Assembly: GCA_019828565.1 (NCBI GenBank) | Contig: JAHDYR010000067.1 | Location: forward strand, 807,094-871,093 | Direction: 5' to 3' | Length of the DNA: 64,000 nt | DNA from: Carpediemonas membranifera BICM | Lineage: Eukaryota > Protista > Fornicata | Part shown: positions 31,040 through 64,000 of the stretch, one piece after another | Numbering within the stretch: position 1 is the first letter of the stretch | Layout: every line of letters begins with the position of its first letter | Position numbers and translations under genes: made by a program | The notes under the pieces: model-generated | Seen by the model: only the letters and a program-made list of their open reading frames with translations | Databases searched by the model: none | What the model was told of the DNA's origin: nothing

Positions 31040-33470
31040 ATGGGCCCAAGCACCAAGTCCAACGCCTTGAGGAGCTACACTGACTCAAAGAGGCTCAAGA
31101 GGCGCATGCTGGAGTATGAGCGCGAGCTCGAGCATTTCCCGAAGATCGTTCCAACATTCGTCCGCGTTATCATCAGGAAGCTGAGCTTTGGTATGTATCC
31201 TTTGATTCTATTATCCAGGCCGTCTCTTTACTGTCAGTACCAACGCTGTTGTAGCCCCCGTAGAACCGGAGCTCATCATCGGCTACCTTCTGCTCTCCAT
31301 CATTCCGATAGCTGCACAACTCATCCATGTTGCCCCACACATCCGTTGGCACGCCATCATCATATACTACGCGGTGTCCTCTCTGACGCTCCAGTTCCAG
31401 TTCGTGCTGCGGTCTCTCAATCCGCTCTCGCCATACCCCATGTTTCTGACAATCATCCCGTTCACAATACTGGTGTTTCTGTCCCGTGAGGTGCACCAAC
31501 TGTCCTTCATCTTCAACACCATGATGATCTTCCTCGTATACCTCCAGGTCAACCTCCGATTCCTGGTCTTCACGCTTTATAGCACCACCATGGGCGCCGT
31601 CTACCTAGTCACAGTCTTGGCCATGAAGTTCTACTACAGAGACGACTCTACGTCCGCCTCGTTCTTTGGCACCTCGCTCGAACAACCCATCCACATTCCC
31701 TCAGAGATGTTCATGGCCTTCTCCATAATCCCGGCGCTGATCTTCGTCGCACAGCTGCAGCGGTACATCCGATGGTTCGGCCTCTACCACCGTGCTCGCG
31801 AGACCATGCTGAAGCTCGGTATCACTGAGTTCACCCGCGCTAAAGCCCGCCACCGCACGAAGGCGTTGAGCACGCCCCTCGACGAGGTCCAAACGAAGCT
31901 CCAGGGCATGCTGAAGGCCAACCTCCCCGAGGACGTCAAGTCTGAGATGCGAAAGGTGATCCAACGTCTCCGTATGGCCAGGGTAAGCCACGGCCACGTC
32001 GACTTCGAGGAGAAAGCCGAGGACGTCAAGAAGTTCGTCCTACAGGCACTAGGCCAGAGTGCGATCTTCCAGTCGATGTCCGACAACGGGACAAACCCCA
32101 TCACCACTGTACCCGAGAACAGCGCGAAGCCCCACAGCCTAGACATCGACGGCCCTGGCGACTTTAACCTCGATGAACCAGAGCATCCCCTCGGTAAGAA
32201 CGCCAGTTGGCACGCCCTGACGCCGATGGGACCAGCAACGAACCTGCCTGATGAGATGACGGACGCATGCCCACGCCTGACGATGAGCCAGTGCAATGGC
32301 TGTACCCTGGACGGCACTCGGCGGTTTCCCCTCAAGGAGGCTGATATACCTGCGAACATGGCGAAGTGGATGGGACCACTGGCCGGGAGTCTGCAACCCC
32401 ACGTCCGGGCCGTGCACTTCGCGGAAGAGAGTGGCGTGGAGGACAAGCTGACGGTGCTGGTGAAGAGCCTGGAGAGCTACAACCTCAACATCTTCATGGT
32501 CGGCTCAACGTTCAACGGCCATGCCATCACCGTTATCGTCTCGACTCTGTTTGCCATGTACGATCTTTACGAAGACCTCCTGATCACCCCAGTCCGGCTC
32601 GTCCGGATCCTACTTGACATAGAGGACCAGTACACCACAACACCGTACCACAACAAGGTGCATGCCGCTGACGTCGCCGCTTCGATCCACTGGCTCGTCA
32701 AGAACTTGCCCCCCTCGTACCACTCATACATATCATCGTTCGAGCTCGCTGCAGTGTTTCTAGCAGCAGTACTCCATGACGTGGGTCATCCCGGCGCGGA
32801 CAACCGGTTCCAGGTCCAGCTCCAGACGCCGCTAGCTCAGTACTACAATGACGAGTCGGTGCTAGAGTCGTACCACGCCTCCCATGGTTGGAAACTTCTC
32901 ACAAGACCAGGGCTGGATCTGTTCGAGAAGCTGTGCTTCAGTAGTGTCATGGTCTTCCGCACGACATTCACGTCCCTAATCCTCAGCACAGACATGGGCC
33001 GACACATCGAGTACCAGAGCAGACTCAGGAGTGCAGTCGAGGTTGAGTCAGCCACGTCACTCACTGATATATTCCAACCCGACAAGGATGACCAGCGTCA
33101 CTTCCTACTTCAGTCCTTGTTCAAGATGGCCGACATATCAAACCCGACCAAGGATTGGCCCCTGTGTAAGCGATGGGCGCTTAGAATGCTCAAAGAGTTC
33201 TTCGACCATGGTGACATGGAGCGGTCGCTGGGTCTGCCCGTCTCTGATCTCAAGGACCGTGAGACATCGGCCCCGGCGAAGAGTCAGCTGGGGTTCATGA
33301 GGTATGTGGTCATTCCTTACGCCTCAGCTCTGGCCAACTGCCACGGGTCGTACGCCATCCTTGTCCAGAGCGCGGAGAGGAACTTGGAGCACTGGGAGGG
33401 CCTTGTGTGTGATTCGGGGACAGAAGGGCTGCTTGCTGAGATCGAGGCGCTCAATGTGTGGGCGGAGTGA
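31040..33470 (+). CDS. Membrane-anchored class I phosphodiesterase (intron 31191-31218; start approximate)
   Basis: N-terminal TM helices; YHNKVHAADV, HDVGHPG, ADISNP, EFFDHGD.E, SQLGF. A 28-nt GTATGT..CAG intron joins the ORFs in frame. Confidence 0.92.
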
Positions 33471-33681
33471 AAGGTGCAGGCTCACATGATACACTAGGGA
33501 ACCATTAAATCGTCCAGAGATGCGTATGGTGTAGTGTTTGCTTCGATTTCGAGGCATATCCTGTGAGACTTCGAAAGAATCGGAAACACTACGAGCGCCT
33601 CACAAGGGCCAGACAAGTGGCCTAATGAAGAAATTTGAGACCACCGCTCGTCAAATTGATCCTAAATCTGAGATCATCAGA

Positions 33682-33721
33682 TGTTGCGCAGTATAAACAC
33701 ATTTTTCGAACCTCCAAGACA
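33682..33721 (+). repeat. Left terminal direct repeat (40 bp)
   Basis: TGTTGCGCAGTATAAACACATTTTTCGAACCTCCAAGACA. Confidence 0.85.
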
Positions 33722-33830
33722 GGGCCTGAAAGGAACGATCAAAGTGCCAAACTGCACAACATCATCCGTCCGTAGACGAATGTTGGCGGTTAGCCAATTG
33801 ATGATACTGGAATGATGTTGGAAGGCGCGG
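33682..33830 (-). ncRNA. Putative Fanzor omegaRNA scaffold (5' boundary unknown)
   Basis: Sits between the RuvC C-terminus and the element end. c(UACG)g hairpin at 33763-33782, hairpin at 33783-33797, and an 11-bp pairing of 33751-33761 with terminal 33682-33692. Confidence 0.6.
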
Positions 33831-35023
33831 GATCGATGTGCGACTGAACGGAGAGCCACTGAGCTCATCTTCCGTGGCAAGAGAACGCCACAGGATGTTC
33901 TCTGCAGCACTCTTGTCCCGATGATCAACATTCAGAGCATCAGGAACTGTTGCGCGCCACTGAGCACCACGGCACTGTGGATTTTCGCAGAGCATCACAC
34001 GATGTGGGTGAACGTGCTGGTCATCACGCGGACGAACTCGCTTGTAGGGGGCGTGGCAGTGAGGGCAGACGACGGTGGTGCGGTCCTCGTTAACCATGTT
34101 AAGATCGACGACAATGATTAATTATACCTCTTGAGAAGGGGTACTATCTCTCTCGCGAACTTTCGATATGGCGCGCAAGGAATGAACATACCAGCAGGCG
34201 TGGTGAATCCCGAGCTCCCGTAGAAGACTTTCAGGCGAATGGGGGTGGCGATGGGATGGTGGCGACCGAACTCCCGAGCCAACTGTTGGCCGCAGCGGGC
34301 GAAGTGCTTCTGGCGAAGGATGTGGTTCGCAAAGCGCACTCGGCGGAAAGACTTACGCATTCCAGCCTCGAAAATGTCGTTCGCGTTGTCCAGCACAAAC
34401 CTAATAGAGTTGTTGATACTCACTAGTCTTGTGCTCTTGAACGACGCGGCCGTCATATCAAAGCCGAAACTTGGCGTCTTAGTGTATCCGCACTTTGGGA
34501 GGACGCCGGAGCTGGTGGTGCCATCGGGGTGCCTGATGTAATACCCTCCGATGGACCTCGCGCCCGGGTCGAACCCCATGAGGTGGGCATCAGGATCCGG
34601 CGCGGGCGGAGCCTCGGCATTATTGGTCCCGAGTCGGGGGCGCTCTTTCTCCCGCCCTCTCGCTCGCTTTCGAACAGGCATGCTCGCATCATGTTGTGGC
34701 CGATAGCGGCCGAAGCCTCTCTTAATAGTCACCGCCACACAGACCCCATCGGTGCTCAGGCTGAGCAGACGGCCCATTGACCTGGGGTTGTCCCGGTAGC
34801 GTCTTTTCTGCTCTTCTGTCAACGGTTTGGTGGCGTGTGGGAGTGTGGGATTAATTCCCACACGATGACAGAAGTTCTCGTCCAGTAGGCCCATCGTTTC
34901 ACTGTAGGCCATGAAGCCCGGTCGGACGGGGGCCATGGGCACGATCGGCACGAGGCGAGGCTGGCGGAGCGACATCGAGTACTCCCCGTTGAAGTGGCTG
35001 ATGAGGCCACTCAACGTCTCCAC
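33762..35023 (-). CDS. Fanzor1 (TnpB-derived RuvC nuclease), split by a 1-nt frameshift near 34118; N-terminus short or unclear
   Basis: PIVP..PGF, STDGV, RuvC-I GFDPG (D at 34570), RR.RF...RQK bridge region, YG, RuvC-II VNEDRTT (E at 34088), Zn finger CPHC..CENPQC, RuvC-III HRDKSAAENI (D at 33917). Confidence 0.9.
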
Positions 35024-35240
35024 TCCGTCTGTCCGTCATAGATGAAGATGACATATATGAGCCGACGATGAACACCATTACCAGCATATACAAGTGTAGA
35101 AGTGAATTTAATGAGGAAAGACAAATGACAAATGAGACGACGTGTGAGCGATTGTGATGTTTGCAGCTGTGCTGACGTCCACGAAGAAGACGCTTTGTGG
35201 AAGCCCTGGAGAAGACGATCTCCCTACCGACTTAAGACGT

Positions 35241-35262
35241 GAGTAGGAGGGAGACAGGGCAG
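35241..35262 (+). other. Polypurine tract abutting the right terminal repeat
   Basis: GAGTAGGAGGGAGACAGGGCAG|TG; same GGGCAG|TG junction as the Gypsy B PPT. Confidence 0.7.
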
Positions 35263-35304
35263 TGTTGCGCAGTATAAACACATTGTTCGACCTTCAATAG
35301 CACA
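35263..35304 (+). repeat. Right terminal direct repeat (42 bp)
   Basis: TGTTGCGCAGTATAAACACATTGTTCGACCTTCAATAGCACA. Confidence 0.85.
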
Positions 35305-35381
35305 TCAGATCTGCCCTTATCCTGCACCTACAAAATCACGAAGACCGACATCAGCGTCGGTTGGCCATAATACTACAAAAA

Positions 35382-37004
35382 ATGGACACGATATCCGCTT
35401 CACTCGGTAATGTTTTTGATCTGGCGCTCAACTCGAGCTTCAACCTGCTTTCCTTGTACGGCCGTTGGATCGATCATTGGTGCTACTCTCCCTCTCTTAT
35501 TAACGACACCGTCTCTGATTTTGCCGCTACGATCGGTGTTAGTCCGTATGACGTCCGCATGTTCGCGTCTCTTTTGATTGCGTTCATCTTTGCGTTCTTC
35601 CACCAGCTGCTCCCGTGGAAGACGCCCACGATCCACCACATCTACAACCTTGTCGCTGGTGTGTTCCTGACCATCCTCGCATTTGGCCCCAAGGTTTTGA
35701 ACGTCTATATCATGATTACCACGGTCTACGTCCTCCTCCGTCTCAACCCCCGCCGTCTGGGTCTGTCACCGAGCTTCATGAGCTGGCTGATCTTCCTTCT
35801 CACCTTCGGATACCAGTCCTGGGAGCAGGCCCGGCGTATCTACCACCCCCACTCCATGGAAAACGTCCACTTCACCAGTATGCCCATGATTCTCGCCCTC
35901 CGTCTTTCATCCCTCGCCTTTGACGTAGCCAGAGGCTCTGAGATGACAGCCGAGGAGCTAAGTGAGAAGCCCAAGCCCATCGGCCCCTTTGGTCGTCTCA
36001 AGACTCCCCTCGCCCGTTGCCCCGAACTCCTCCAGTATCTGGGGTACAGCATGTTCTACGGTTCAGTAATTGTCGGCCCCTTCTTCACATTCACCGAGTA
36101 CTCCGAGGTCACTAGCGGCAGGGCGACCGAGGGCATGGCCAAGCCAGACCGTCGTCGCCTCAGGATCGAGTCAATCGTCTGGGGAGTCATTTATCTCGGG
36201 TGGAGCTGCGTGCTGATGTCATTCTGGGTGCTCTTCTCCTTCTTCCCGCCCGACCCGATGCTCCCCTACCATGCCCAACACGCGACATACCTTGCCACAC
36301 CCCTGCTCTGGCGAATCGTCCGCTACCACATCATCCCGATTGAACTCATCAAAGCCAAGTACTACGCTGTCTGGGGCCTCGCCCACGGCGCCTCAACGAT
36401 GAGCGGGCTGACGTACAGCGGGCGGCGGCACACCATGGCCAGGGTATGGTCCAAGTTCGAGTTCAGACAGGGGGCTAACTACACGTGGCTGATCACACAG
36501 TTCCCGCCCAACCTCGCCCTGATGACCACCCACTGGAACGCAGGCATCGGCTTCTTCCTCGCCTCGTACGTTTATAGCGGTGTCAGAAGAAACGAACTAA
36601 TCAGTCGTCGCCTGGGCAAGAATGTCAAGCTGGTCGCCACCATCGCCACCTTCGTCACGAGTGCCATCTGGCACGGCTGGGAGCCCGGCTACTACCTGTT
36701 CTTCCTCGCCGCGGGCTTCTTCACCAGCCTCGCCCGTCGTATAAGCGGAATCCTGCGCCCTTTCTTCGTGTCCAGAGGCCGTCTGGCCTATGTCTACCAT
36801 GTATTCACCACTCTCAGCACCATGGGCTTCATGTACCTCGAGATGCCGGTATTCTACTTCCTCAGCTGGGAGAGGTGCATGGGATACTTCCAGGCGGTCC
36901 ATTACCTTCCCTTCGTCATCCTTGGAGGCGGGTTCGCACTGTCGGCCGTCATCCCACCCCTGCCTGCCAGAAAGAACTGGGCAGAGGGCAAGAAGATGGA
37001 CTAG
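35382..37004 (+). CDS. MBOAT lysophospholipid acyltransferase
   Basis: Multi-TM; GPFF, KYY.VW.LA, WN, SAIWHG..PGYYL.F; KKxx ER-retrieval signal. Confidence 0.93.
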   Translation: MDTISASLGNVFDLALNSSFNLLSLYGRWIDHWCYSPSLINDTVSDFAATIGVSPYDVRMFASLLIAFIFAFFHQLLPWKTPTIHHIYNLVAGVFLTILAFGPKVLNVYIMITTVYVLLRLNPRRLGLSPSFMSWLIFLLTFGYQSWEQARRIYHPHSMENVHFTSMPMILALRLSSLAFDVARGSEMTAEELSEKPKPIGPFGRLKTPLARCPELLQYLGYSMFYGSVIVGPFFTFTEYSEVTSGRATEGMAKPDRRRLRIESIVWGVIYLGWSCVLMSFWVLFSFFPPDPMLPYHAQHATYLATPLLWRIVRYHIIPIELIKAKYYAVWGLAHGASTMSGLTYSGRRHTMARVWSKFEFRQGANYTWLITQFPPNLALMTTHWNAGIGFFLASYVYSGVRRNELISRRLGKNVKLVATIATFVTSAIWHGWEPGYYLFFLAAGFFTSLARRISGILRPFFVSRGRLAYVYHVFTTLSTMGFMYLEMPVFYFLSWERCMGYFQAVHYLPFVILGGGFALSAVIPPLPARKNWAEGKKMD

Positions 37005-50813: not shown

Positions 50814-52640
50814 TGAGAAGAGAATTCGTTTACTTGGGGAAATCCGCATAGTTGACCAAAGGTCAATCGGGGTCAAACCCACGTCACTACCCCCTTCGAC
50901 GAGAAAAACCCACCTACTGAAGGAAGGGAAAGAAGGTACTTAGTACTTGTCGAGGGACTTACGAGCTTTGCGTGCCTTACGCTTGATGATCTCGAGGTGC
51001 TTTATGGCACCGAGAGGCTCGTCGGTCACTTCATCGTAGCCTAGCCACTTGACCCGGGCTGAACCCTTTTTCCAGTCAATAGATACTATATCTTCGACTC
51101 TGTACTGCTCCTGATCCGACTCAGCTAGCTGCCTCATAAGGTCTTCGCTAATATCAGTCTCGAACTTCATCAGCTTGTCAATATGAGTAGCCTTGAGCCG
51201 GTTATCGCTCAGCGACATGAGCTTAGCTCTGTTGCTAGGGAGTACCTCTACCACCTTCCACGGACCAGTGTGGGGTGTGTCGAGTTTTTGTGGAGCTTCG
51301 TTCTTCCAAAGAACGTAGTTCCCTGGCTCTAAGCCTGTGGTCTCGATCGGGCTCTGGTGAGGCCCTACTGCCTGTTTAGCCGCCTCTTCGAGGTTAGCCA
51401 GGGTGACCTTAAGGTTTTCGTAGAATCCTTTGTAGTCGAAGACGCCTAGCGTCTCTTCAGACCACAAAGCACTGTCCATTATGTTGTGTGGGTGGCCATA
51501 GACCAGCTCGTGGGGGGTAAATCCCGTGGCCGCCTGCAGTGTACCGTTGATTATCATCCGTACTGTTGGGAGCAGGGTCGACCAGTCGTCCCTAGGAGCG
51601 ATAGAGAGAGCCATCCACCTTAGGTGTCTTGCTACTTCGGCGTTACGCCTCTCCGCCAGCCCATTGCTTTGTGGGTGGTAAGGTGTCGTGAAGTGACGGC
51701 TGACCCGTAGGGTGTCCGTCAACGCTTTGACTATCTGGTTTGCGTATTCTGGTCCGTTGTCTGACAGGAGCTCCTTAGGTAGCCCGTGCCTCGAGAATAC
51801 GTTGTCCCATAGGGCTTGCGCGACGGTGTCTCCGTCGATGCTCGCTACCGGAATGAGTTCCGTGTATCGCGTGAACATATCCGTCGCTACAATGATGTAG
51901 CGGGCGCCCCTCTGATCCTTCGGAAGAGGTCCCATGGAGTCGACCGCTACGGTCTCCCAGGGTGACGTTCTAGTCGACGACCCAGCCTCAGGCTGCAGAT
52001 AGTTCTTCATCCTTGCCTTAAGGCAGATCGGGCATGTGCGAACAATTCGCTTGCAGTCTTGCAACCTGCCTGGCCAATAGGCCATGGTCCTCAGGCGCTG
52101 GTAAGTAGCGTTTGTTCCACTATGGAACTGATGTGCGACCTTGAGGTACCGCGAGCGAATATCGCCTTCTGGTATGATGGGGACGGCGTCCTTCAAGTAA
52201 ACGCCGTCCACCAGGGTTACTCCGTCGAGTTTCACCCAACCTTCCTTAGTAGACTCGGGCTGCTTGGCCTGGTCATCCCGAACCTCCTCTAAGGATGGTC
52301 CCAGGGTCGCTTCCCCCACATCTAGCAGGTTCGCTTGTTCCTGGTTACCAGAAGGAATATCCCTCGACAGCATATCCGCCATCTTGTTTGACTCACCCGC
52401 AATATGCGTGATGGAGAAATTGTAGTCTGATAGAATCATAACCCATCTGAGCAGCTTCTTTGAAAGTTCCTTTCTCTTCAAGAGATAGACTAAGTTCTGG
52501 TGATCAGTATGAATCTCGATCTCGTCTTTAAGACGGAAAAGCTGTGCCATGTCGGGTCGAGTCAGACAGTAGATGATTGCGTGGATTTCTTGCTCATATG
52601 TGGGCCAACGCGACTGAGCCGGCGTGTGGACACCTGCGAA
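50814..52640 (-). mobile_element. Chromodomain Ty3/Gypsy element C, 3' half (RNase H-integrase-chromodomain; stop at 50940)
   Basis: TDHQNL, N..AD.LSR, H..H/CPIC, DSMGP..SDNGPEY..NG.AER, GPW, VKWLGY. PPT GAAGGGGGTAG at 50887-50897, LTR begins at 50886 (distal end uncertain). Confidence 0.9.
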
Positions 52641-52698
52641 TGTGCTGAAGGTTGAACGTTTACATAAACTGCGGGAGGAGAGCGAGGACCGCGTCACA
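52641..52698 (-). repeat. 58-bp 3' mini-LTR of element A
   Basis: TGTGAC...GCACA. Follows A's reconstituted PPT AGGGGGGCAGGA once element B is removed, and contains A's in-frame stop. Confidence 0.7.
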
Positions 52699-52704
52699 TC
52701 CTGC

Positions 52705-55700
52705 TGTGGCGTAAACGACGGGTATTCGAGAATTCGTTTTAATCAGGTGATGCGTCACTGCCCTCCCTGAGCAACTCGGGGTGAGCGGCTAAGAACTTCT
52801 TGGCGGCGGGAGTGTGGCGGACGGCGTCGATGGGCTCCCAGGACAGCTCGGAGCTACCGAGCCACTTGACGCGCAGGAAGCCGGGCTTGGACTTGACGAT
52901 CCGTTCAACGTACCATTCCTCTTGGTCTGTAGCGGCGAAGTTGGCGAGCTCGCCCTCAGAGAGGTCGGACTTGAGCGGAATGAGGTGGGACAGGTGGACT
53001 GTGCGTCGCGGTTCGTTGGCGAGGAGCGGTACGACGACTGCCGTGAACGGGTTGACCTCAATGACCTTGAACGGTCCGGTGTGGCCGTGGAGCTTGCTTT
53101 CAGCGTGGTTCTTGCGCAAGACGTAATCACCGGGCTTGACTGGAACCGACTGCGTCTCTGCCCTCCCCTCACGAGTCTTGGACTGGCGTTTGTGAGCCTT
53201 GCGGCAGAGCTTGGCCAGGAGCGCGTCCATGACGGTGAGGTATTCGGCGACAGAGGTAAGCGGGGTCTCGTCCTCGGCGTTGTTGTCTGGCTGGGGTATC
53301 TGCCGGTCGGCAGCGTGTGTGCCGTAGAGTAGCTCGAACGGGGTGAACCCCGTCGCGCTGTGAACCGTGCTGTTGATTATCCACGCGACATATGGCAGTA
53401 GGGTCGTGGACCATGCGTCGAAGGAGTTAAATGCCAGCGCTAGGGTACGTAGGTGGCGCTTGATTTCGCGATTGACGCGTTCGACGTGACCGTTCGACTG
53501 CGGATGGAAAGGCGTGGTCCGGTGGTGTGTGACCGATAAGCGCTCGGTTAGAGCGGTGATGATACGGTTGGCGTATTCCGGGCCTCCGTCTGTGTGCAGG
53601 ATGGCCGGGATGCCGTGGCGGCAGATAGACGCCCAGATAGCGGCGGCAGCCGCGTCTGCATTGTTCGAGGGGGCTGGCACGAGCTCAGTAAAGTGCGTGA
53701 ATGTGTCAGTAATCACGACGACATACCGGTTGCCGGCCGAGTCCTCTGAGATGGGGCCGAGCGTATCGACGGCTACGCGTTCGAATGGTGTGCTGCTCGG
53801 GGTCGCGCCCATCTTCAGCTTGATGAAGTTCGCCAGACGGGTCTTCTGACAGATCAAACAGGCGTTGATCAGGTCGGATACGGTGTGTTCGAGCTGTGGC
53901 CAGTCGTAACCCAAGTCACGCACGGCCTGAGCGGTCTTCTTGACGCCCAAGTGCAGCCGGTGGGCCTCGGCTAGGACGTCGCGACGCGCGTCGGCGGGTA
54001 CGAATGTGCGACCGTGATACTTGACGACACAGTTGACGATGGTGTGCTTGGAGGGTCTCTCGTCAGCGTGCTCCTTCTGAGAGGCGAGCACTCTCGACTC
54101 TAGCGTGTTAGCCGTGACCTCGGCGATCTCAGCGGGGCGGGTCTGGAAAGGGAAACGGCTTAAGAAGTCGGCCGTGACGTTGGACTCGCCCGGGACGTGG
54201 TGGATCTTGAGTCTGAACTCCAAGAACGACAGTAGCCATCGGCGATGCTTCCGATTGTGAGCGGCCATGCGGTGGAGTGCCATCAGATTCTTATGGTCGG
54301 TGAACACGGTCAGATCGGGGTGGCCCAGGAAGAGAGAGTACATGTCAGGACGTGTCAGACAGTATATCAGAGCATACATCTCCTGGTCGTAGGTGCTCCA
54401 TCTTTGTTGAACGTCCGAGAACGCCTTGGAGAAGTAGGCGACGACTCTCCAGTCTGTGGGCGTTTGCTGTTGTAGCAGTATGCCGCCTAGGCCGAGGAGA
54501 CTAGCGTCCGTCTCGAGGCGCCAGGGTTTGGAGAGGTCTGGTATGGCGAGTGACTCCTCAGAGGCGAGCTGTGTCAGAACAGCCGCGATAGCCTCTTGGT
54601 GTGCTGAAGTCCACACGACCTTGGCGTCCTTGCGGAGGAGGCCATTGATGGGCGCTAGGATGCGCTGGCAGTCAGGGATAAAATCTGCCACGTAGTTGAT
54701 GTGGCCGAGGATCTGACGTACCTCGTGCGTGGTCGTCGGGCGTGGGAGGCTCTTGATCGTGTCAATGCGTGAGGGCTGAGGGCGACGACCGTGTTCGGAG
54801 ACGATCTCGCCGAGACAGTCGAGAGTCTGGTAGCCAAAATGACACTTCTCGGCGCGCAGCCTGATGTTCTTGTCACTGAGTAGAGCGAGCGTGCGCTGGG
54901 TGCGCATGACGAGTACCTCGGGCGATGGCGCGCCAGCAAAGATGTCGTCTATGTAGTTCCTGACGCCCTCTGAGTATACCGGGCGCAGGACGTTGGCGAT
55001 GGCCCGCTGGAATTGTGCGGGGAGGTTCTTTAGGCCAAACGGGGCGACCATATATTCGAAAAACTCGCCCGAAACCCGCACCGCGGACAGGTAACGGTGG
55101 GCATCCTTCAATGGCATCTGGTGAAACCCTTGGCGAAGGTCTAGACCGAAGAAGTACTTGCTGCCGACGAGGTCCTGGATGAGCGTGCGGGTATCTGTCA
55201 TGGGGAAAGCGTCAGTCACAGTTGCCTCGTTGAGGGCCCTGTAGTCTGCGCAAAGTCGTAGTGGGCGGCGTCCGTCCGCGTCGGGCTTCTTCTGGACAAT
55301 CACAGCCGGGCTAGAGACTGGGCCGTGTGCGTCGCGGATGAGCTGGGCTTCGTACATTTCATGGAGCTGTCGCTTGATCTCGGGAAGCCAGTCGGCGCGG
55401 ATGCCGCGTGGGTTGGCTTGTGGCAGAATGGCGTCCGGCTTCAGGTCAATGGTGGCTTCCGCGATGTCGGCGCCGCCGAGAGGCAGCTTGGGGTCGAAGA
55501 CGTCGGCGTTGGCCTGGAGCACAGCGAGTAGCTCGTCGTGTAGAGGGAACGAGGGGTCAATGTCGAAGGTTGGCGTGGCGAAGGACGAGACGTCGTCCGG
55601 CAGGTCGTCAGTCTCCGAGTCAACCTCGTCGATGTATTGATTCTGGGCCGGTGTGACATCGTCGGCGGGGTCCTCTGCTGACGGTGGTAGCTGAATGTTG

Positions 55701-57640
55701 ATGCCCGTGTCCGACATGAGGCCTAGGTGCCGGAGGAGGTCTGCCCCGAACAGGAACTTGTGGGCCTCCCCGGAGATGACTGGTACGGTCCACGTCAGCT
55801 CGACAGCGTTTGGTACGATGCCGTCGATAACGAGCTCGGCTATGACGGCGGTGGTGTCCTCGCAAGGTCGCTGGTCGGCCATCTTCAGCGTGTAAGCATG
55901 ATTTGTGATCATTACCGGGCCGGCCTCCTTCAGCGTGGCGAACGTGGCCTCCGAGATACAGGTCTTGGCGGCTGCCGGGTCGAGCTTCGCCCGCAGTCTC
56001 GTGCCGTTGACGAGGATGTCGTGGTAGATCGGCTTACCGATGTTTTCGCGCTGCGCTGACGTGTCGACTTCGTCGATTGACTCATCGGTGTCGGACTCGG
56101 CGTCTATGTCGACCTCGTTGATGGATTGACTGAGGCGCTCGAGCCGGTTCGTCTCCTTGTTTCGCGTCCAGCCTGCCGCTGGGTTAGGGGCTCTCGCGTT
56201 GCGTTTGGGCGCTTGGGTGGTCGTTGTTGCAGGTCGGTCAGGGTTGTTGTGGTGGCCAGGGGCCTTCTTGGGCTTGGCACCCACAACAGCTGGTTGAATA
56301 GGACGCGATGGTTGGGGGGCGGCACTGCGCTGTGTCTTCAGATGAGGGCACGCCTGAGTGACGTGGGACGAGTTGTATCCGTGGTAGTCGCAGAAGTGGC
56401 GGAAGGTGGGGTTGATGTAGTAGTTCGCCTTGTCTTTCAGCTGGACATACGGGTCTGGGCCGCTGATCTTGCGGGCTATGGGTTTGCGTGTGCGGGATCC
56501 GCCTGTCGCTTGCTCACCGTGGGGTTGCGGGGGCTGGCCGGTGCGGAATGCTCTCCACAGAACGACGATGTAACCGTCGTGGTCCTCTTTGAGGTCCCTA
56601 AGGTTATCAAGGACGTCATCGATGTCCTCTGCATCATCTATGATGTAGGAGTCGAAATAGTCCTTTGCTTCGGCGGAGAATCCCTTAAGTGCAAGCTCTC
56701 TGACTCTTGCGGCGAGAACCTTCCAAGGAATGGCTTGCAGTGCAGGAGCAGAAGCATCAGTGTTCACGAGATCGATGAACTCGCGCAAAGCGGCAATAGT
56801 TGAGCGATGTTTGGATGCTTTGCCATAGAGTGCACCGGGAAGGTTGATGGACTTGATGCGCGCGCCGACGTCCAGGGACGGCATGAGTGTGACGGAGCAG
56901 GCGGCTACGATGTCGTCGGCCTCGTCATGGAGGTAGGCGCGAATGTCGGTGACGTCGTCCCAGTCGGACTCGTCACTGGACGTGTCGGAGTTGTTGGTGG
57001 CGGCAGCCTCGTCATCGGCCGGCTTGGGTGGGGCCAGGGCTGCGTTGACCTCGGCGACGTACTCGTCGTCGCGGAGGGGGACATCTGGGTTGAACTTGTT
57101 GATGAGGGGCACATAAACCGGGGCTTTGTGGTCGATCTCGGCTACTGCAGCCGTGAATACGGCTTCTGCGCGGCGCTGTGCAGCCGCGGCCATCGGGCCT
57201 CTTCAGGAAAGGCCGCGGCCGCCGCTTCAGCGAGCATAAACAGGTCTTCTTCGAGAGCGGCGGTTAGACGGGCTACTGCCTGCTTGGGGGGTGGCGTGGA
57301 GGTGCTTGGGGGCGTGATGGGAAGTGAGAGCTTCATCTCGCGCCTAATGGCGCTGCGGATTACCGCATCGGGACATACATCGTCTTCTAGGTCCTCGAAG
57401 GTCTTATAATCAGAGGTGGGTCTCCAATTGGCCCGTAAGAACTCCTGCGAGCTGATGCTTAGGCATCTAAGGAACGATGTAGGAAATCTTGCATGAGGAA
57501 GTTCCCGCTTGTATTCCTTCGCGGCGGAGTTGAGCAGTGGAAGGGAACTTACGTCGAATTTCGTAGCCATAGGGAGTGATTAATCACTGTGGCGTAAACG
57601 ACGGGTATTCGAGAATTCGTTTTAATCAGGTGATGCGTCA
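52705..57640 (-). mobile_element. Full-length chromodomain Ty3/Gypsy element B with identical 53-bp LTRs and 4-bp TSD
   Basis: LTRs at 52705-52757 and 57588-57640 (TG..CA); TSD CTGC at 52701-52704 and 57641-57644; PPT AGGGAGGGCAG at 52758-52768. Confidence 0.93.
52739..57570 (-). CDS. Gag-Pol of element B (frameshift in gag near 57195)
   Basis: CHHC knuckle; protease KLDPAA; RT LDLRQGFHQ, PFGLKN, YIDD; RNase H TDAS; integrase HHCC/DDE; GPF; chromodomain WYVERI..VKWLG..SWEP. Confidence 0.92.
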
Positions 57641-58725
57641 CTGCCCCCCTAAGCTTCAGCTTATTCTTCTTGAGATAGTCGCGGGCAACGGCGACGTGGC
57701 GCAGGTTGGAGGCGGGCTCCCAGGTGTGTTCGTCGTAACCGACCCACTGAGTTAGCAACTCGAGCTGGCCGTTCTTGCGACGGTGCTTCTTGATGGCGGC
57801 GACCTCGTAGGAACGGTCGTCAGAGGCAGCCAGGGCCTTGAGGCGTTGCAGGCTGCTACGTGTCTTAAAGCGGATGAGTTGGTCGCGATGGGCTACGAAA
57901 GGGTCACCCTCAAAGAGGTCCACTAAGCGGACGGCGTGGTTGTCCAGGACTGCTAGGATCTTAAAGGGGCCCTTGAACCCGTGAAGCTTCGGTGTCTTGG
58001 TGCGGTTCAGCAGGGCAAGGTCGCCCTCGTGGAACGGTGTGTCTTCACGGTCGGCGTTGCGCTTATTAAGGCGCCTTTCGACGGTTGACTTCTGTCTCTC
58101 GGCCGCCCTAGAGGTAAGCTTATCAAGGTGGCCTCGAAGTTGTTTGATGTAGACGGCAGCCGTTGAAATGGGTGTGTCCGGTGAGGTGGCTGTGGCGTTG
58201 AGGATCTTCGCGACGGTGGAGCTTGGATCCATGTGGTCGCCGTACAGCATTGCATGCGGGGTGACCCCAGTCGCGGAACAGATGGTGGTGTTCAGAAAGA
58301 GCTGCACGACCGGCAGGAGATTGCTCCAGTTGTCAAACTTGTCAAACTGCAGCGCCAAGCATCGCACCAGCTTCATCACCTCCGCATTGCGGCACTCTAC
58401 TAGTCCGTTGGACTGTGGGTGATAGGGTAGTGTGTATTGTTGAGTAATCTCGGTGTTGTCCAGAAGTGCCTGAATGATTTTCCCTGTGAATTCTGGGCTA
58501 TTGTCAGATTTGATGAATAGTGGGGTGCCGTGGCGTGAGATCACTTGTGTCCAAATGGCGTCAGCGGCGGCATCGGCAGTGTTCTCCGGCGTGGCGGCGA
58601 GCTCAGTGTAACGTGAGAACATGTCTACCATGACGGTGATGTAGCGTGCACCGTGGGCGTCGGCCGGGATGGGGCCGATCGTGTCGACCGCAACTGTGTG
58701 GAAGGGCTTGTAGATAGACAGCGAC
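57641..58725 (-). mobile_element. Ty3/Gypsy element A, integrase core + chromodomain (5' truncated)
   Basis: PFHTVAVDTIGP, SDNSPEF, QSNGLVE, GPF, YEV..I..HR...W.GY...TWEP. Confidence 0.9.
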
Positions 58726-60854: not shown

Positions 60855-63800
60855 TTACCCGTCTTTCCGGAGGTTCAGAAGGGCACGTCTGCCGTTCTGC
60901 AGTCCCTCTCTGACGGTATGGTCCTCGCTGCGGAGGAGCCAGAGCATTTCCAGGATTGCCCTTGAGTTGTACCACTCCGCCTCCTGCCCTTGCCTTAGGG
61001 CGTGGTACTGTGTGCGTAGATGCGCCTCCGCCAGGATGTCATTCCATCCTTCTGGGCGTTCTACCGCCTTGCATTGGCAGATGATGTGGCTTTGTGTTCC
61101 CAGGGGCTGGTTGTATGCCCATTCTGAGAGGATTTTGGTGGTTTCCGCCGCGGTTCTGGTGACAGTGTACAGGCGAGTAATGGTGTCACCTTCTGAGTCC
61201 AGGGTACATAGGGGGCAACACCGCTTGATCCTGCTCAGGAGGGCCTGGGGCTGGCCGATCGCGCTCCCAAGTATGGCTCTGCTTCTGCCACTGTTGCTGG
61301 GGGAGGGGAGTGTGTTGGATGCAGTCATGATTACTCTCTTGACTTCCCGTCTGGTTATCATCTCACCCTTGATCATTCCTGGTTTCTTGGGTCTCTTCCC
61401 TTGCTGCATGCTGAGGATGACTTCCGGGGCTAGTACTGTTGCCACCCCTTTGGCCGTTCGGCTCCCGGTGTGCAGTAGTTCTTCTGCTGTGAGGGTCCAG
61501 CCTCCCCTCTTTGCTCTTTCCCTGGCGGACATCTCCTCCTGTGTGCCCTGGAGGACGCTCCGTCGCCATTGGTAGAGGCGATGTAAGACCGATCCTCTCT
61601 CCGCTGTCGCCCAGTCCAGATTCCCTAGGGGGGTCGGACGGTCCGGGTCGTGCGCAGACTCATAGAGCCTCACCGCTCTCTGCCCCATATCTGCCTCCCA
61701 GCACATCCATCCCATTAGTACACGGGCGGCTCCTCCTCCCCCTGGTCCTGTGCCTGCCATTAGGCCGCGCCAGTTGTTCCAGATGGCTCTTCCCCTGGCG
61801 CTTGGCCCCAGATCTCGATCCCGAACTCGATCTTGGGCCAGAGGAAGGTTCTGAGGATGGATTCCGAGGTGGCGGCCGGGGTGGATCCTTTGGTCCACCC
61901 TGCTCTCCTGCCAGGGCTAGGTATTTCCGGGATTGTGACGTCTTCATTTTGATGCATGCTGCCAACGGATTCTTCCCGCTGGCTAGCCAGAGTCCCAGAT
62001 ACCTTGCTGAGTCTGACGCCAGTGTGGGAGTTCCTTGGATGCTGACCGCTGCAGTTACGTCGGTACTTATCACCACACTTTTGCCTGGGCTGGTCTGGAG
62101 TCCATGGGCTTCAATTACCCTGACCACTGCGTCTGTGCCTTCTTCGGCGAGCTGCGGGGTCTCGGCTGAGATGCTTGTATCATCTACAAACATTGCAATG
62201 AGGCAGTTTTTGGGCCTATCGTCCGTTGGAGGGAGGCAGGGGTCCGGGATCTCTCTATGCCGGAGGTACAGTGCCGCCTGGCTTAGCCAGTTAGCTGTGA
62301 AGAGGATGAACAGAGTGGGGGCCACCACACATCCTTGCTTGACCCCCCATGTTTGTTCTGGACCATGTGCTTGCCCCTCGTACCGAGATGTACGTTTCTG
62401 TAAGTGTATTTCGGATGGCCCTCGTCAGTCTTGGGTGTACCCCCCATGAGCGTCAACTTGTTCACCAGCAGGTCCCTTGGGACCGTATCATATGCTTTTG
62501 CTATGTCAAGTAGGACGCTGGTACGGTTTCCGGACTGGTGGAGTTGGGCTAGGAGGGCTATGTGATCCACTACAGTTTTCCCTTTCATGAACCCAACTTG
62601 CTCTCTGGGGATGAACTTCTCCACCGTCGGCCTGAGGCGCCATTTCAGTATCCTCCCGTAGGCTCTGTATAGGAGGGGGGGTGAGGGAGATCGGTCTGTA
62701 CGAGCTGGGCGTGAGCTTGTCCTTCCCAACCTTGTGGATAGGCGACACCGCTGCATACTTCCATGTGGTTGGCATGGTCCCGCTGTCGTATACTTTCGCG
62801 AGCAGGACTGTGATTGCCTCGTACGCTGACTCGGGGAGGTCCCTCAGACAATCTCCAATAATCCCGTCCAGGGCCTCCGGCCGAGGACTTCCTTATGGAC
62901 TTGACCGCCGCTGTCACTTCTTCAAGCGATGGCGGATGGTCCTCCATGTCCGTTTCCGGCTCGGTTTCCCAGGTGGGTTCCCAGGTGGGTTCCTTCCCGG
63001 AGCTTACCTTCGCGTACTGCTCCTGGAGGGAGTCTGCAATCTCCCTCTGCCTTGCTAGAATCTTGTTTCCAGCCTTCAGCATCACCGGGAGACCGGCGTG
63101 CTGCTTCTCGTTCCAGAAGCGGAACACTTGGTTTGCGAGGATCCTTTTTGTCGTTTTGTACCCATCACGGGATCCAACCTCAACCTGCTCATTCCAGTCA
63201 TGTTGGAAGGTCCTCCATGATCTGCTCAGTGCTCCGTTGAGGGACTTTTTGATATCTTTGGCGGCGGTTTTGCTCCAGGTGGAGGCTTTGGCCAGCCGTT
63301 CCCATACCTCACTCGGGATACGTTCCTGGTTTTCTACAGCGAATGGGTGCCTTCTGGAGGTAGCAAACCCGGTGGACAACCATTTCCTTATGAGAGTCTC
63401 CATCTCGTCCACTGGTATTTTGCTGTCTAGTGGTGGCCACTCTTCTAGCTTGGGCCCTGTTCTCCTGGGTTTGACCAGCCACGTATCGATCCGTGGGATT
63501 TCCAGTCTCTTTGATATCTCTGGTTTCCCTGTCGGGTTGCTATCCCAGGTGAGCTCTATGGCTTTGTGTGCCGACCCCCAGTGCCCGATTGTGGTCTTGT
63601 CTATTACCCTAACAACCGGGTTTTGGATACCCCCTGTTACCGCTGCATAGTCTATTGTGGACGTTCGGGAGTTAGTCCCGTACGTCGGTGCAGTTGGTGC
63701 TATTGGGGTGAGGTTCCATCGCTGGAGGGTCATCGCAGTTGCTTGCCTGAGTTTCCCTGGCCTCCTGTTCCAGTCCCCGATGATGATGATGTCACACCCC

Positions 63801-64000
63801 TCATAGTTCGCGACGGTTTGCTCTAGCATCCGGTCGAACTCCTCAATCTCGGGTCGTGCACATCCACTATCGGGAGCGTAGATATTGATGACTGCCGTGG
63901 CCCTCGATGCTTTGAGGATGCTTACTTGGATTCGTGGGTTCGTCCCGTCGGACACGCCTACGTCCCATTCCGCTTTGGAGTGCGGGCTAATCAGTGTGGC
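60855..64000 (-). mobile_element. Non-LTR retrotransposon (LINE) ORF2: APE-RT-Zn finger, multiply frameshifted; 5' part outside the window
   Basis: INIYAP, IIIGDWN, TIDY, SAH; YRPISL, QVGF, LDIAKAYDTV, FVDD, YLG; CPLC...HIICQC, spread over about 5 ORFs. Confidence 0.92.

Follow-up and report, generated by a model that had tools for sequence, protein, structure and literature searches.

A decayed Fanzor-only mobile element of Carpediemonas membranifera with marks of integrase-type insertion at a set distance from a host promoter-like motif

The DNA described here is a 64,000-nucleotide (nt) stretch of contig JAHDYR010000067.1 of Carpediemonas membranifera BICM, referred to below as the window. 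It contains a unit that begins TGT, ends ACA, and carries on its minus strand the remains of a gene for a Fanzor1-like protein of the RNA-guided nuclease type. The unit is a dead copy of a family of non-autonomous mobile elements of about 2.25 kb, whose sole gene encodes this nuclease. The whole TGT-to-ACA stretch is the moving unit; it is inherited end to end and inserted by a 5-bp staggered cut. In our assessment, the feature is probably a broken Fanzor-only element of integrase-type insertion, placed 13 nt upstream of a host motif, and its family is not copied in the canonical way of long terminal repeat (LTR) retrotransposons. Coordinates of the window copy are positions within the window (Table 1). 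Repeats and motifs were counted in the 24.2-Mb C. membranifera assembly (69 contigs).

The direct repeat of the window copy occupies 33682-33714 and 35263-35295 and is 91% identical over 33 nt. Its 22-mer TGTTGCGCAGTATAAACACATT is the same on both sides, and 100 shuffles of the sequence gave 0 chance matches. An earlier annotation made from the sequence alone (the first-pass annotation) had described direct repeats of 40 and 42 bp. The repeat itself stands, but its length does not: the repetition is confined to the first 22-33 nt, beyond which the tails of the two sides differ systematically, and the choice of an inner "...ACA" end for the left repeat is arbitrary. The other marks reported there were recovered, namely the pentamer TCAGA on either flank, TATAAA inside the repeat, and a purine-rich tract (22/27 purines, ending GGGCAG) that adjoins the right repeat. 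As also reported, the two ends of the window copy share no inverted repeat beyond TGT/ACA, and Fanzor is the only coding content. No second protein domain was found on either strand of the element, and its plus-strand open reading frames (ORFs) matched no family.

The Fanzor gene is divided between two minus-strand ORFs, 34121-35023 and 33765-34109, which together carry GFDPG, NEDRTT, a CxxC...CxxxxC finger, and HRDKSAAENI. The RuvC-II glutamate lies in NEDRTT (codons 34074-34091), the RuvC-III aspartate in HRDKSAAENI (codons 33894-33923), and the zinc finger in CPHC (34056-34067) and CENPQC (33972-33989). The first-pass annotation had named a Fanzor1 with all three RuvC acidic residues and a zinc finger. 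The identity and the D/E/D and finger codons are upheld, but the gene is defective. Relative to full-length copies (L040, L046), which measure 2.2-2.3 kb, 669 bp of N-terminal coding sequence are missing, and a sister copy (L059) has the same deletion (reference L040 positions 1342-2013; 100/99 support). In addition, a 5-bp insertion near 34117 stops the frame at 34118-34120. This insertion is absent from the contigs of other copies in all four sequencing runs (X1-X4, small runs of 2017 that are only guessed to be RNA and whose contigs show neither strand nor true ends). An intron joining the two ORFs was considered and rejected: the intact copy L046, a 674-aa open frame with a complete RuvC triad, reads straight through LLKGYNIVVDLNMVNEDRTT, the place where the window copy has its 5-bp insertion. 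The window gene is a pseudogene by internal deletion and frameshift.

The relationship of the family protein to Fanzor was seen only by profiles that include remote relatives. The direct Pfam match to Cas12f1-like_TNB was weak (E 0.018), phmmer of the single sequence against the Protein Data Bank (PDB) matched no solved Fanzor, a paralogue-only profile against PDB reached E 0.3 at best, and an AlphaFold model from the paralogue-only alignment had a predicted local distance difference test (pLDDT) score of 39. The profile of Carpediemonas paralogues found remote TnpB-like proteins among 1.8 billion sequences at E 7e-7 to 1e-3, and five of the seven relatives examined exceeded the Pfam curated cut-off for Cas12f1-like_TNB. 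Profile-profile comparison by hhalign with TnpB/Fanzor-like proteins gave a probability of 99.4% over RuvC-II, the finger, and RuvC-III. The invariant D, E, and D of these proteins are matched in the alignment by GFDPG, NEDRTT, and HRDKSAAENI, and the four finger cysteines (CPHC...CxxPQC), between RuvC-II and RuvC-III, are invariant in the alignment with the remote relatives. A joint profile of paralogues and remote relatives matched the solved structures SpuFz1 (E 9e-24), PpFz1 (3e-16), and GtFz1 (1e-14), followed by Fanzor2, Cas12f, and TnpB. The top Foldseek matches were all Fanzor or Cas12f, with a moderate model (pLDDT 63, TM 0.35). The comparison with TnpB/Fanzor profiles and structures that the first-pass annotation had called for thus came out in its favour, and by these profiles the protein is classed as Fanzor1-like, within the TnpB family.

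The genome contains 239 copies of the 22-mer and none of the control. Matches to a fragment of the Fanzor protein number more than 130 and fall into three or more identity classes (93-97%, ~57%, and ~51%). End comparisons were drawn from the loci read, with 33 left ends, about 40 right ends, and 6 solo units. A perfect 5-bp target-site duplication (TSD), different in each case, flanks 20 of the 28 complete pairs, and solo units have such duplications as well (GACGG in L008, GTGAC in L014, AAGAC in L019, and GGCGT in L003). The first-pass annotation had looked to a multicopy 22-mer, constant TG..CA boundaries with differing duplications, and solo repeats, and all were found. Full-length elements measure 2.2-2.3 kb. 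There are at least five internal-deletion classes, each at several loci with duplications of their own; hence, these derivatives moved after the deletion. A mini-element of 139 bp, likewise flanked by a duplication, retains just 21 nt at its left side. The repeat of a second Fanzor subfamily is a different one (172 copies, pairs 0.9-2.4 kb apart); the architecture is shared, with a purine tract GGGTGAGTGGAGGTAG, a repeat starting TGT, a right tail ending CCACA, and solo units with a duplication. The data support a multi-copy, non-autonomous element with variable 5-bp duplications, solo repeats, and deletion derivatives.

Some loci of the family are noted separately. In two segmental duplications, L043/L044 (C13:600334-616178; 12 kb) and L061 (C13:927400-931800; 3.8 kb), element copies have identical flanks, and these pairs are therefore not independent insertions. 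Facing 22-mers 52 nt apart at G000:C7:221998/222050 and C7:288279/288331 would, from their positions only, be palindromic tail-to-tail right ends. Locus L056 (G000:C13:342587-346153) is a chimera of a Fanzor element and a Ty3/gypsy element on the same strand; its 857-aa frame (193-2766, minus) fuses the N-terminal half of Fanzor (to ...PSFGFD) with a reverse transcriptase (RT) and RNase H.

When a retrotransposon is copied by LTR reverse transcription, the new copy receives two identical LTRs, and the LTR pair of the Gypsy element in the window is indeed identical at 53/53 positions. The repeats of the Fanzor element are of two fixed kinds. All left repeats end (G/T)TTCGAACCTCC(C)AGACAGGGCC (33/33), and all right repeats end GTT(T/C/G)GACCCTTCAATAGCACA (about 40). 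The tails part after nt 22-25 in 28/28 pairs, and a left-type tail stands at one right junction of more than 100 genome-wide. The terminal 21 nt of the right end have no template beside the left repeat. Because the end repeats are unlike, ordinary LTR reverse transcription did not make these copies. The canonical two-jump, Gypsy-style route is not supported; insertion of the DDE-integrase type is well supported. Two further observations concern the repeats. Right-repeat position 26 (window 35288; T, C, or G) varies between sister copies in three of eight pairs, and its left counterpart is C in all 33 copies; the right repeat changes faster than the left. An A12G variant of the 22-mer, examined in regard to U3 copying, is carried by 18 right and 6 left repeats, and the carriers form no clade.

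The first-pass annotation had proposed a terminal-repeat retrotransposon in miniature (TRIM)-like element. A plus-strand RNA from the left mini-LTR would be copied by a Gypsy RT with two strand transfers and inserted by the Gypsy integrase. This proposal accounts for the TG...CA ends, the 5-bp duplication, the solo repeats, and a cargo antisense to the orientation of the purine tract. Two of its premises were also borne out, since the GGGCAG/TG junction is the same in the window Gypsy and local Gypsy LTRs are truly 53 bp. Against it stand the fixed differences between the tails and the missing template for the right terminus. Nor is there a recognizable primer site: the left repeat ends ...AGACA and is followed by GGGCCTGAAAGG, with no TGG start and no 12-bp palindrome such as the GTGATTAATCAC found after the Gypsy LTR (an 8-bp palindrome, GTTCGAAC, lies within the left tail). 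The autonomous gag-pol partner that the first-pass annotation had anticipated did not appear either; no repeat pair 4-7 kb apart was present among the first 100 matches listed for either subfamily, and the single 3.8-kb pair consists of two separate right ends. Taken with the strand of the promoter-like motif and the Gypsy targets described below, we regard the TRIM-like route as quite improbable.

The retroelements of the window lie to the right of the Fanzor element. A complete Ty3/gypsy element (52704-57649, minus) encodes a 1484-aa pol with RT, RNase H, and integrase and has the 53-bp LTRs and GGGCAG/TG junction mentioned above. The integrase-chromodomain end of another copy (57650-58631) uses the same upstream LTR, so that the two copies form a tandem array. 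Directly after the LTR, a tRNA-type primer site is replaced by the 12-bp palindrome (57587-57576). A second Gypsy family is represented by a fragment (50943-52697, minus; RNase H and integrase) that is cut on its 5' side by the 52704-57649 element, a nested insertion in pol. At the window edge, an ORF for an Exo_endo_phos_2 endonuclease-reverse transcriptase (62648-63955, minus) marks a non-LTR retrotransposon.

Insertion is fixed with respect to a host motif. The right flanks of 45 distinct right ends gave the logo TSD5-N5-SCYWAAMCTGCRC, which reads TSD(5)-N5-S-C-Y-W-A-A-M-C-T-G-C-R-C. The host motif 8-mer TAAACTGC begins at position 14, i.e., 13 nt beyond the right end, in 36 of the 45 sites, and the orientation of the element relative to the motif is always the same. 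With this orientation and the right end 13 nt upstream of the motif, the Fanzor gene therefore lies divergent from the host gene. The genome has 682 occurrences of CYTAAACTGC and 71 of the reversed control, about a tenfold excess. Next to the window copy, the motif precedes the MBOAT start codon (ATG) by 54 nt, and one contig from a probable RNA run has its start at 35340, 15 nt past the motif. An ORF of at least 100 aa starts within 150 nt of 16 of 30 motif sites, compared with 8 of 30 in a crude control. These properties make the motif a candidate core-promoter or initiator element; a literature search found no description of Carpediemonas promoters. About 16 sites of the candidate core-promoter motif SCYTAAACTGCRC lie in the window outside the element.

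Units of subfamily 2 occupy the same target position or one shifted by 1 nt, sometimes at the identical promoter. Two such units, a 69-nt right repeat (L019 1426-1494) and a 96-nt solo unit with the duplication AGCCG (L023 1550-1645), sit at promoter positions of subfamily 1; thus, the same few bases are hit repeatedly by different families.

A position-weight matrix was built from the target motifs and scored across the element and the window. Within the element, the highest score, 14.0 bits, falls on the minus strand of the 22-mer (GTTTATACTGCGC). Real target motifs have a median of 14.7, and no more than 12 sites in the window, both strands counted, reach at least 14 bits. The right repeat of subfamily 2, otherwise a different sequence, has the motif at the same place and on the same strand (13.3 bits). 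Gypsy LTRs score at most 2.4 bits and are without the motif. From the minus-strand match in the 22-mer it follows that the promoter-like motif of the right repeat is directed towards the Fanzor gene, and, judged by its sequence, the right repeat is a putative Fanzor promoter. The left copy of the motif points out of the element. For the TRIM-like route, the repeat thus has its strong promoter motif on the opposite strand. The purine-rich tract, present in two subfamilies, is at the same time complementary to what follows directly downstream of the Fanzor-strand promoter motif. It may be the complement of a pyrimidine-rich Fanzor leader as much as a polypurine tract.

At the other end, the left terminus (TGTTGCGCAGT) and ACTGCACAACA, just past the Fanzor stop, form an 11-bp inverted repeat. 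In the predicted Fanzor-sense RNA this repeat closes an 80-nt hairpin, with a z score against shuffles of -4.15 compared with -2.17 for the opposite strand. Rfam had no match for this RNA region of the element. The folding suggests that the left end may encode a structured 3' portion of the Fanzor transcript, where the omega-RNA would be expected.

In runs X1-X4 (window 33000-36000), contig depth of the element summed to 45,000-95,000 over the left 500 nt and 38,000 near the right end, with about 11 for neighbouring genes. The probable RNA coverage sets in at 33701-33717, immediately past the TATAAAC of the left repeat. On the other side it spans the entire right repeat and continues into flanking DNA of another copy; it drops about 200-fold before the last 19 nt of the element at the left end. 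This asymmetry is that of an R-U5...U3-R transcript and speaks for the TRIM-like route. The 22-mer was also considered as an omega-RNA guide, which is unlikely, as the abundant RNA is without the first 19 nt at the left end. Several contigs span the breakpoints of deletion derivatives or pass from the right repeat into the flank of another copy.

Table 1. Features of the Fanzor element copy and its flanks in the window.
Feature	Position	Strand	Remarks
Left TSD, TCAGA	33677..33681	+	Pentamer repeated after the right end
Left 22-mer, left terminus TGT...	33682..33703	+	Minus-strand reading GTTTATACTGCGC is a near-consensus host promoter-like motif pointing outward from the element
Left-specific tail and subterminal region	33704..33761	+	Tail conserved in 33/33 left ends; holds TTTCGAACC (in most copies GTTCGAAC, 8-bp palindrome) and AGACAGGGC; plus-strand motif-like words CAAAGTGC and CAAACTGC; ACTGCACAACA at 33751-33761 is the 11-bp inverted repeat of terminus 33682-33692
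Fanzor C-terminal fragment	33762..34109	-	Stop 33762-33764; TnpB/Fanzor-like by profile-profile comparison
5-bp frame-breaking insertion and resulting stop	34113..34120	-	LLKRYN and stop here; LLKGYNIVVDLNMVNEDRTT in the intact copy
Fanzor middle fragment, WED/RuvC-I	34121..35023	-	GFDPG aspartate at 34562-34576
Junction of 669-bp deletion	~35029-35034		N-terminal helical domain removed
5' region of Fanzor transcription unit	35035..35262	-	Plus-strand end is the purine-rich tract GACGTGAGTAGGAGGGAGACAGGGCAG (35236-35262)
Right repeat, right terminus ...ACA	35263..35304	+	22-mer and right-specific tail GTTCGACCTTCAATAGCACA
Minus-strand motif in right repeat	35279-35267	-	Positioned to promote Fanzor transcription
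Right TSD, TCAGA	35305..35309	+	
Host promoter-like motif CCTTATCCTGCAC of downstream MBOAT gene	35315..35327	+	Weight score 15.2; contains the 8-mer TATCCTGC, with 13 nt between element end and 8-mer

We favour a broken Fanzor-only element of integrase-type insertion. The element would be integrated in trans by a retroviral-type DDE integrase, held at a factor that binds the promoter motif, in the manner of Ty3. The likeliest source of this integrase would be one of the at least ten Ty3/gypsy families of the genome, and its substrate would be a complete double-stranded copy of the element. Fanzor would be transcribed from the right repeat, with a leader complementary to the purine tract, and the left end would give the structured 3' part of the RNA. 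As for the intermediate, DNA is a realistic possibility, somewhat short of probable, and a non-canonically primed cDNA is a doubtful one. An RNA route would need priming at the 3' end and one jump that restores the first 19 nt.

Several points weigh against this explanation. No helper was found. Gypsy A, the window family and the only Gypsy family compared for target, gave 0 of 30 ends followed by the motif at the target distance and is not supported as the helper; that this family never uses the target also counts against the TRIM-like route. Retroviral integrases are not known to draw their substrate from chromosomal DNA, and a DNA route therefore needs an excising or copying step. An RNA route requires that priming take place at the 3' end and not beside the left repeat. 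The promoter role of the motif has only indirect backing, namely its enrichment, the excess of nearby ORFs, and one contig start. Finally, neither empty alleles, which the first-pass annotation had listed as possible support, nor excision footprints were seen (run contigs; 160 motif sites).

An alternative is a Ginger-like DNA transposon, which would move by cut-and-paste or copy-and-paste through a DDE transposase of the integrase lineage that has escaped recognition. Its similarity to LTR elements would then reflect shared enzyme ancestry and a duplicated promoter module. Unlike ends inherited end to end are what such an element would show, as are the many internal-deletion derivatives that keep both termini, like miniature inverted-repeat transposable elements, and the mini-element with its short left end. 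The purine tract is explicable as the Fanzor leader complement; its conservation in two subfamilies argues the other way. Terminal inverted repeats are missing beyond TGT/ACA, no excision footprint was seen at the 160 motif sites, and no stand-alone integrase or transposase was found. ORFs of 429 aa had been considered as a stand-alone integrase family; they belong to split-ORF Gypsies, with an RT ORF ~370 nt upstream (one locus, C1). We hold the Ginger-like explanation to be unlikely.

The spacing to the motif raises another alternative, in which Fanzor itself makes the insertion cut and a fixed guide seeded on the promoter motif aims the element at promoters. Cleavage by SpuFz1 follows base 16/17 on the non-target strand and base 20/21 on the target strand and leaves 5' overhangs (PMC10432273). 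With the count started at the G of GCAG (the motif end in reverse complement), the 5-bp duplication corresponds to bases 17-21, in agreement with these positions, and the spacing is exact in the 36 sites of 45. The Fanzor-sense RNA after the stop reads GUGCAGUUUGG, whose first 9 nt (GUGCAGUUU) are the reverse complement of the motif core, and each Fanzor subfamily has its own termini, yet a common target. However, only these 9 nt match, and the next positions mismatch. A match of 9 nt is shorter than the seed required by TnpB-type enzymes. The precise TGT...ACA donor ends are left unexplained by a nuclease cut, most moving copies are without an intact Fanzor, although action in trans is possible, and the numerical fit by chance is estimated at 10-20%. 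We consider this alternative very improbable.

Fanzors have been described both from DNA transposons and from single-gene elements bounded by inverted repeats (Bao and Jurka 2013, PMC3627910; Saito et al. 2023, PMC10432273), and Gypsy is a frequent Fanzor neighbour within 10 kb (Jiang et al., bioRxiv 10.1101/2023.06.13.544871). A literature search found no paper that mentions Carpediemonas together with Fanzor. The closest counterpart in content is Spu-1 of Spizellomyces punctatus (PMC10432273, PMC3627910). Both are elements of ~2.1-2.3 kb with Fanzor1 as the sole ORF and no transposase of their own, and both have dozens of full or partial copies, many short "ghost" derivatives that retain the ends, the RuvC D-E-D triad, a zinc finger, and a non-coding 3' region up to the element end that is structured, by prediction in the Carpediemonas family. 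Spu-1 has 30-nt inverted repeats, whereas the Carpediemonas family has direct repeats, TGT...ACA, and a 5-bp duplication. The fixed distance from a promoter motif is likewise a feature of the Carpediemonas family, and its protein is very divergent, linked to the solved Fanzors by profiles only.

In structure, the element resembles TRIMs and large retrotransposon derivatives (LARDs), with direct terminal repeats, TG...CA, a 5-bp duplication, a purine tract before the right repeat, solo repeats, and no gag-pol. It differs from them in having repeats of 22-33 nt that are not identical throughout, compared with more than 100 nt in TRIMs and LARDs, in being without a primer-binding site, and in its nuclease cargo with a putative promoter inside the repeat. 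It also has no autonomous partner with the same LTR among the matches listed. Ty3 of yeast and DGLT-A of Dictyostelium share with it an integrase-type insertion, a 5-bp duplication, and a near-fixed distance from a bound transcription-factor site; their targets are RNA polymerase III genes, whereas the Carpediemonas motif lies upstream of protein-coding genes and the orientation of the element is fixed. Ginger transposons, the subject of a 2010 study by Bao, Kapitonov and Jurka, reportedly have TGT...ACA termini, 4-5-bp duplications, and a Gypsy-like integrase and move with no reverse transcription. The termini and short duplications are alike; the long terminal inverted repeats and own integrase of Ginger were not seen in the Carpediemonas element. 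The IS200/IS605-TnpB elements are similar in their TnpB-family nuclease, an RNA from the gene-distal end (putative in the Carpediemonas family), unlike ends, and a subterminal hairpin. They differ in that they make no target duplication, insert beside a 4-5-nt site, and use an HUH transposase.

What is new here is an insertion placed by a motif with single-base precision, a 22-mer that is itself a copy of this motif, a right copy placed as a putative Fanzor promoter, and a purine tract that may be the complement of the Fanzor leader. The family has hundreds of copies in at least two subfamilies, the marks of integrase-type insertion, and Fanzor as its sole gene. It is conceivable, though rather unlikely, that this Fanzor family rides on a carrier that uses the integration machinery of retroelements, possibly by a non-canonical RNA/cDNA route that keeps the unlike ends, and with precision beside core promoters. 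If true, this would be the first retroelement-type, non-excising carrier of an RNA-guided nuclease. In a bolder version, the 5-bp stagger at bases 17-21 from the motif would be a cut made by the Fanzor itself.

OMEGA and Fanzor nucleases are thought to benefit their carriers by restoring excising transposons. If the Carpediemonas element does not excise, its nuclease must have some other use, for example target cutting or homing into empty alleles. The single-base placement beside a promoter motif that the element ends also carry offers a tractable natural case of promoter-targeted integration. As a by-product, the insertions provide a deep-branching eukaryote, for which no promoters have been described, with a candidate core-promoter element.

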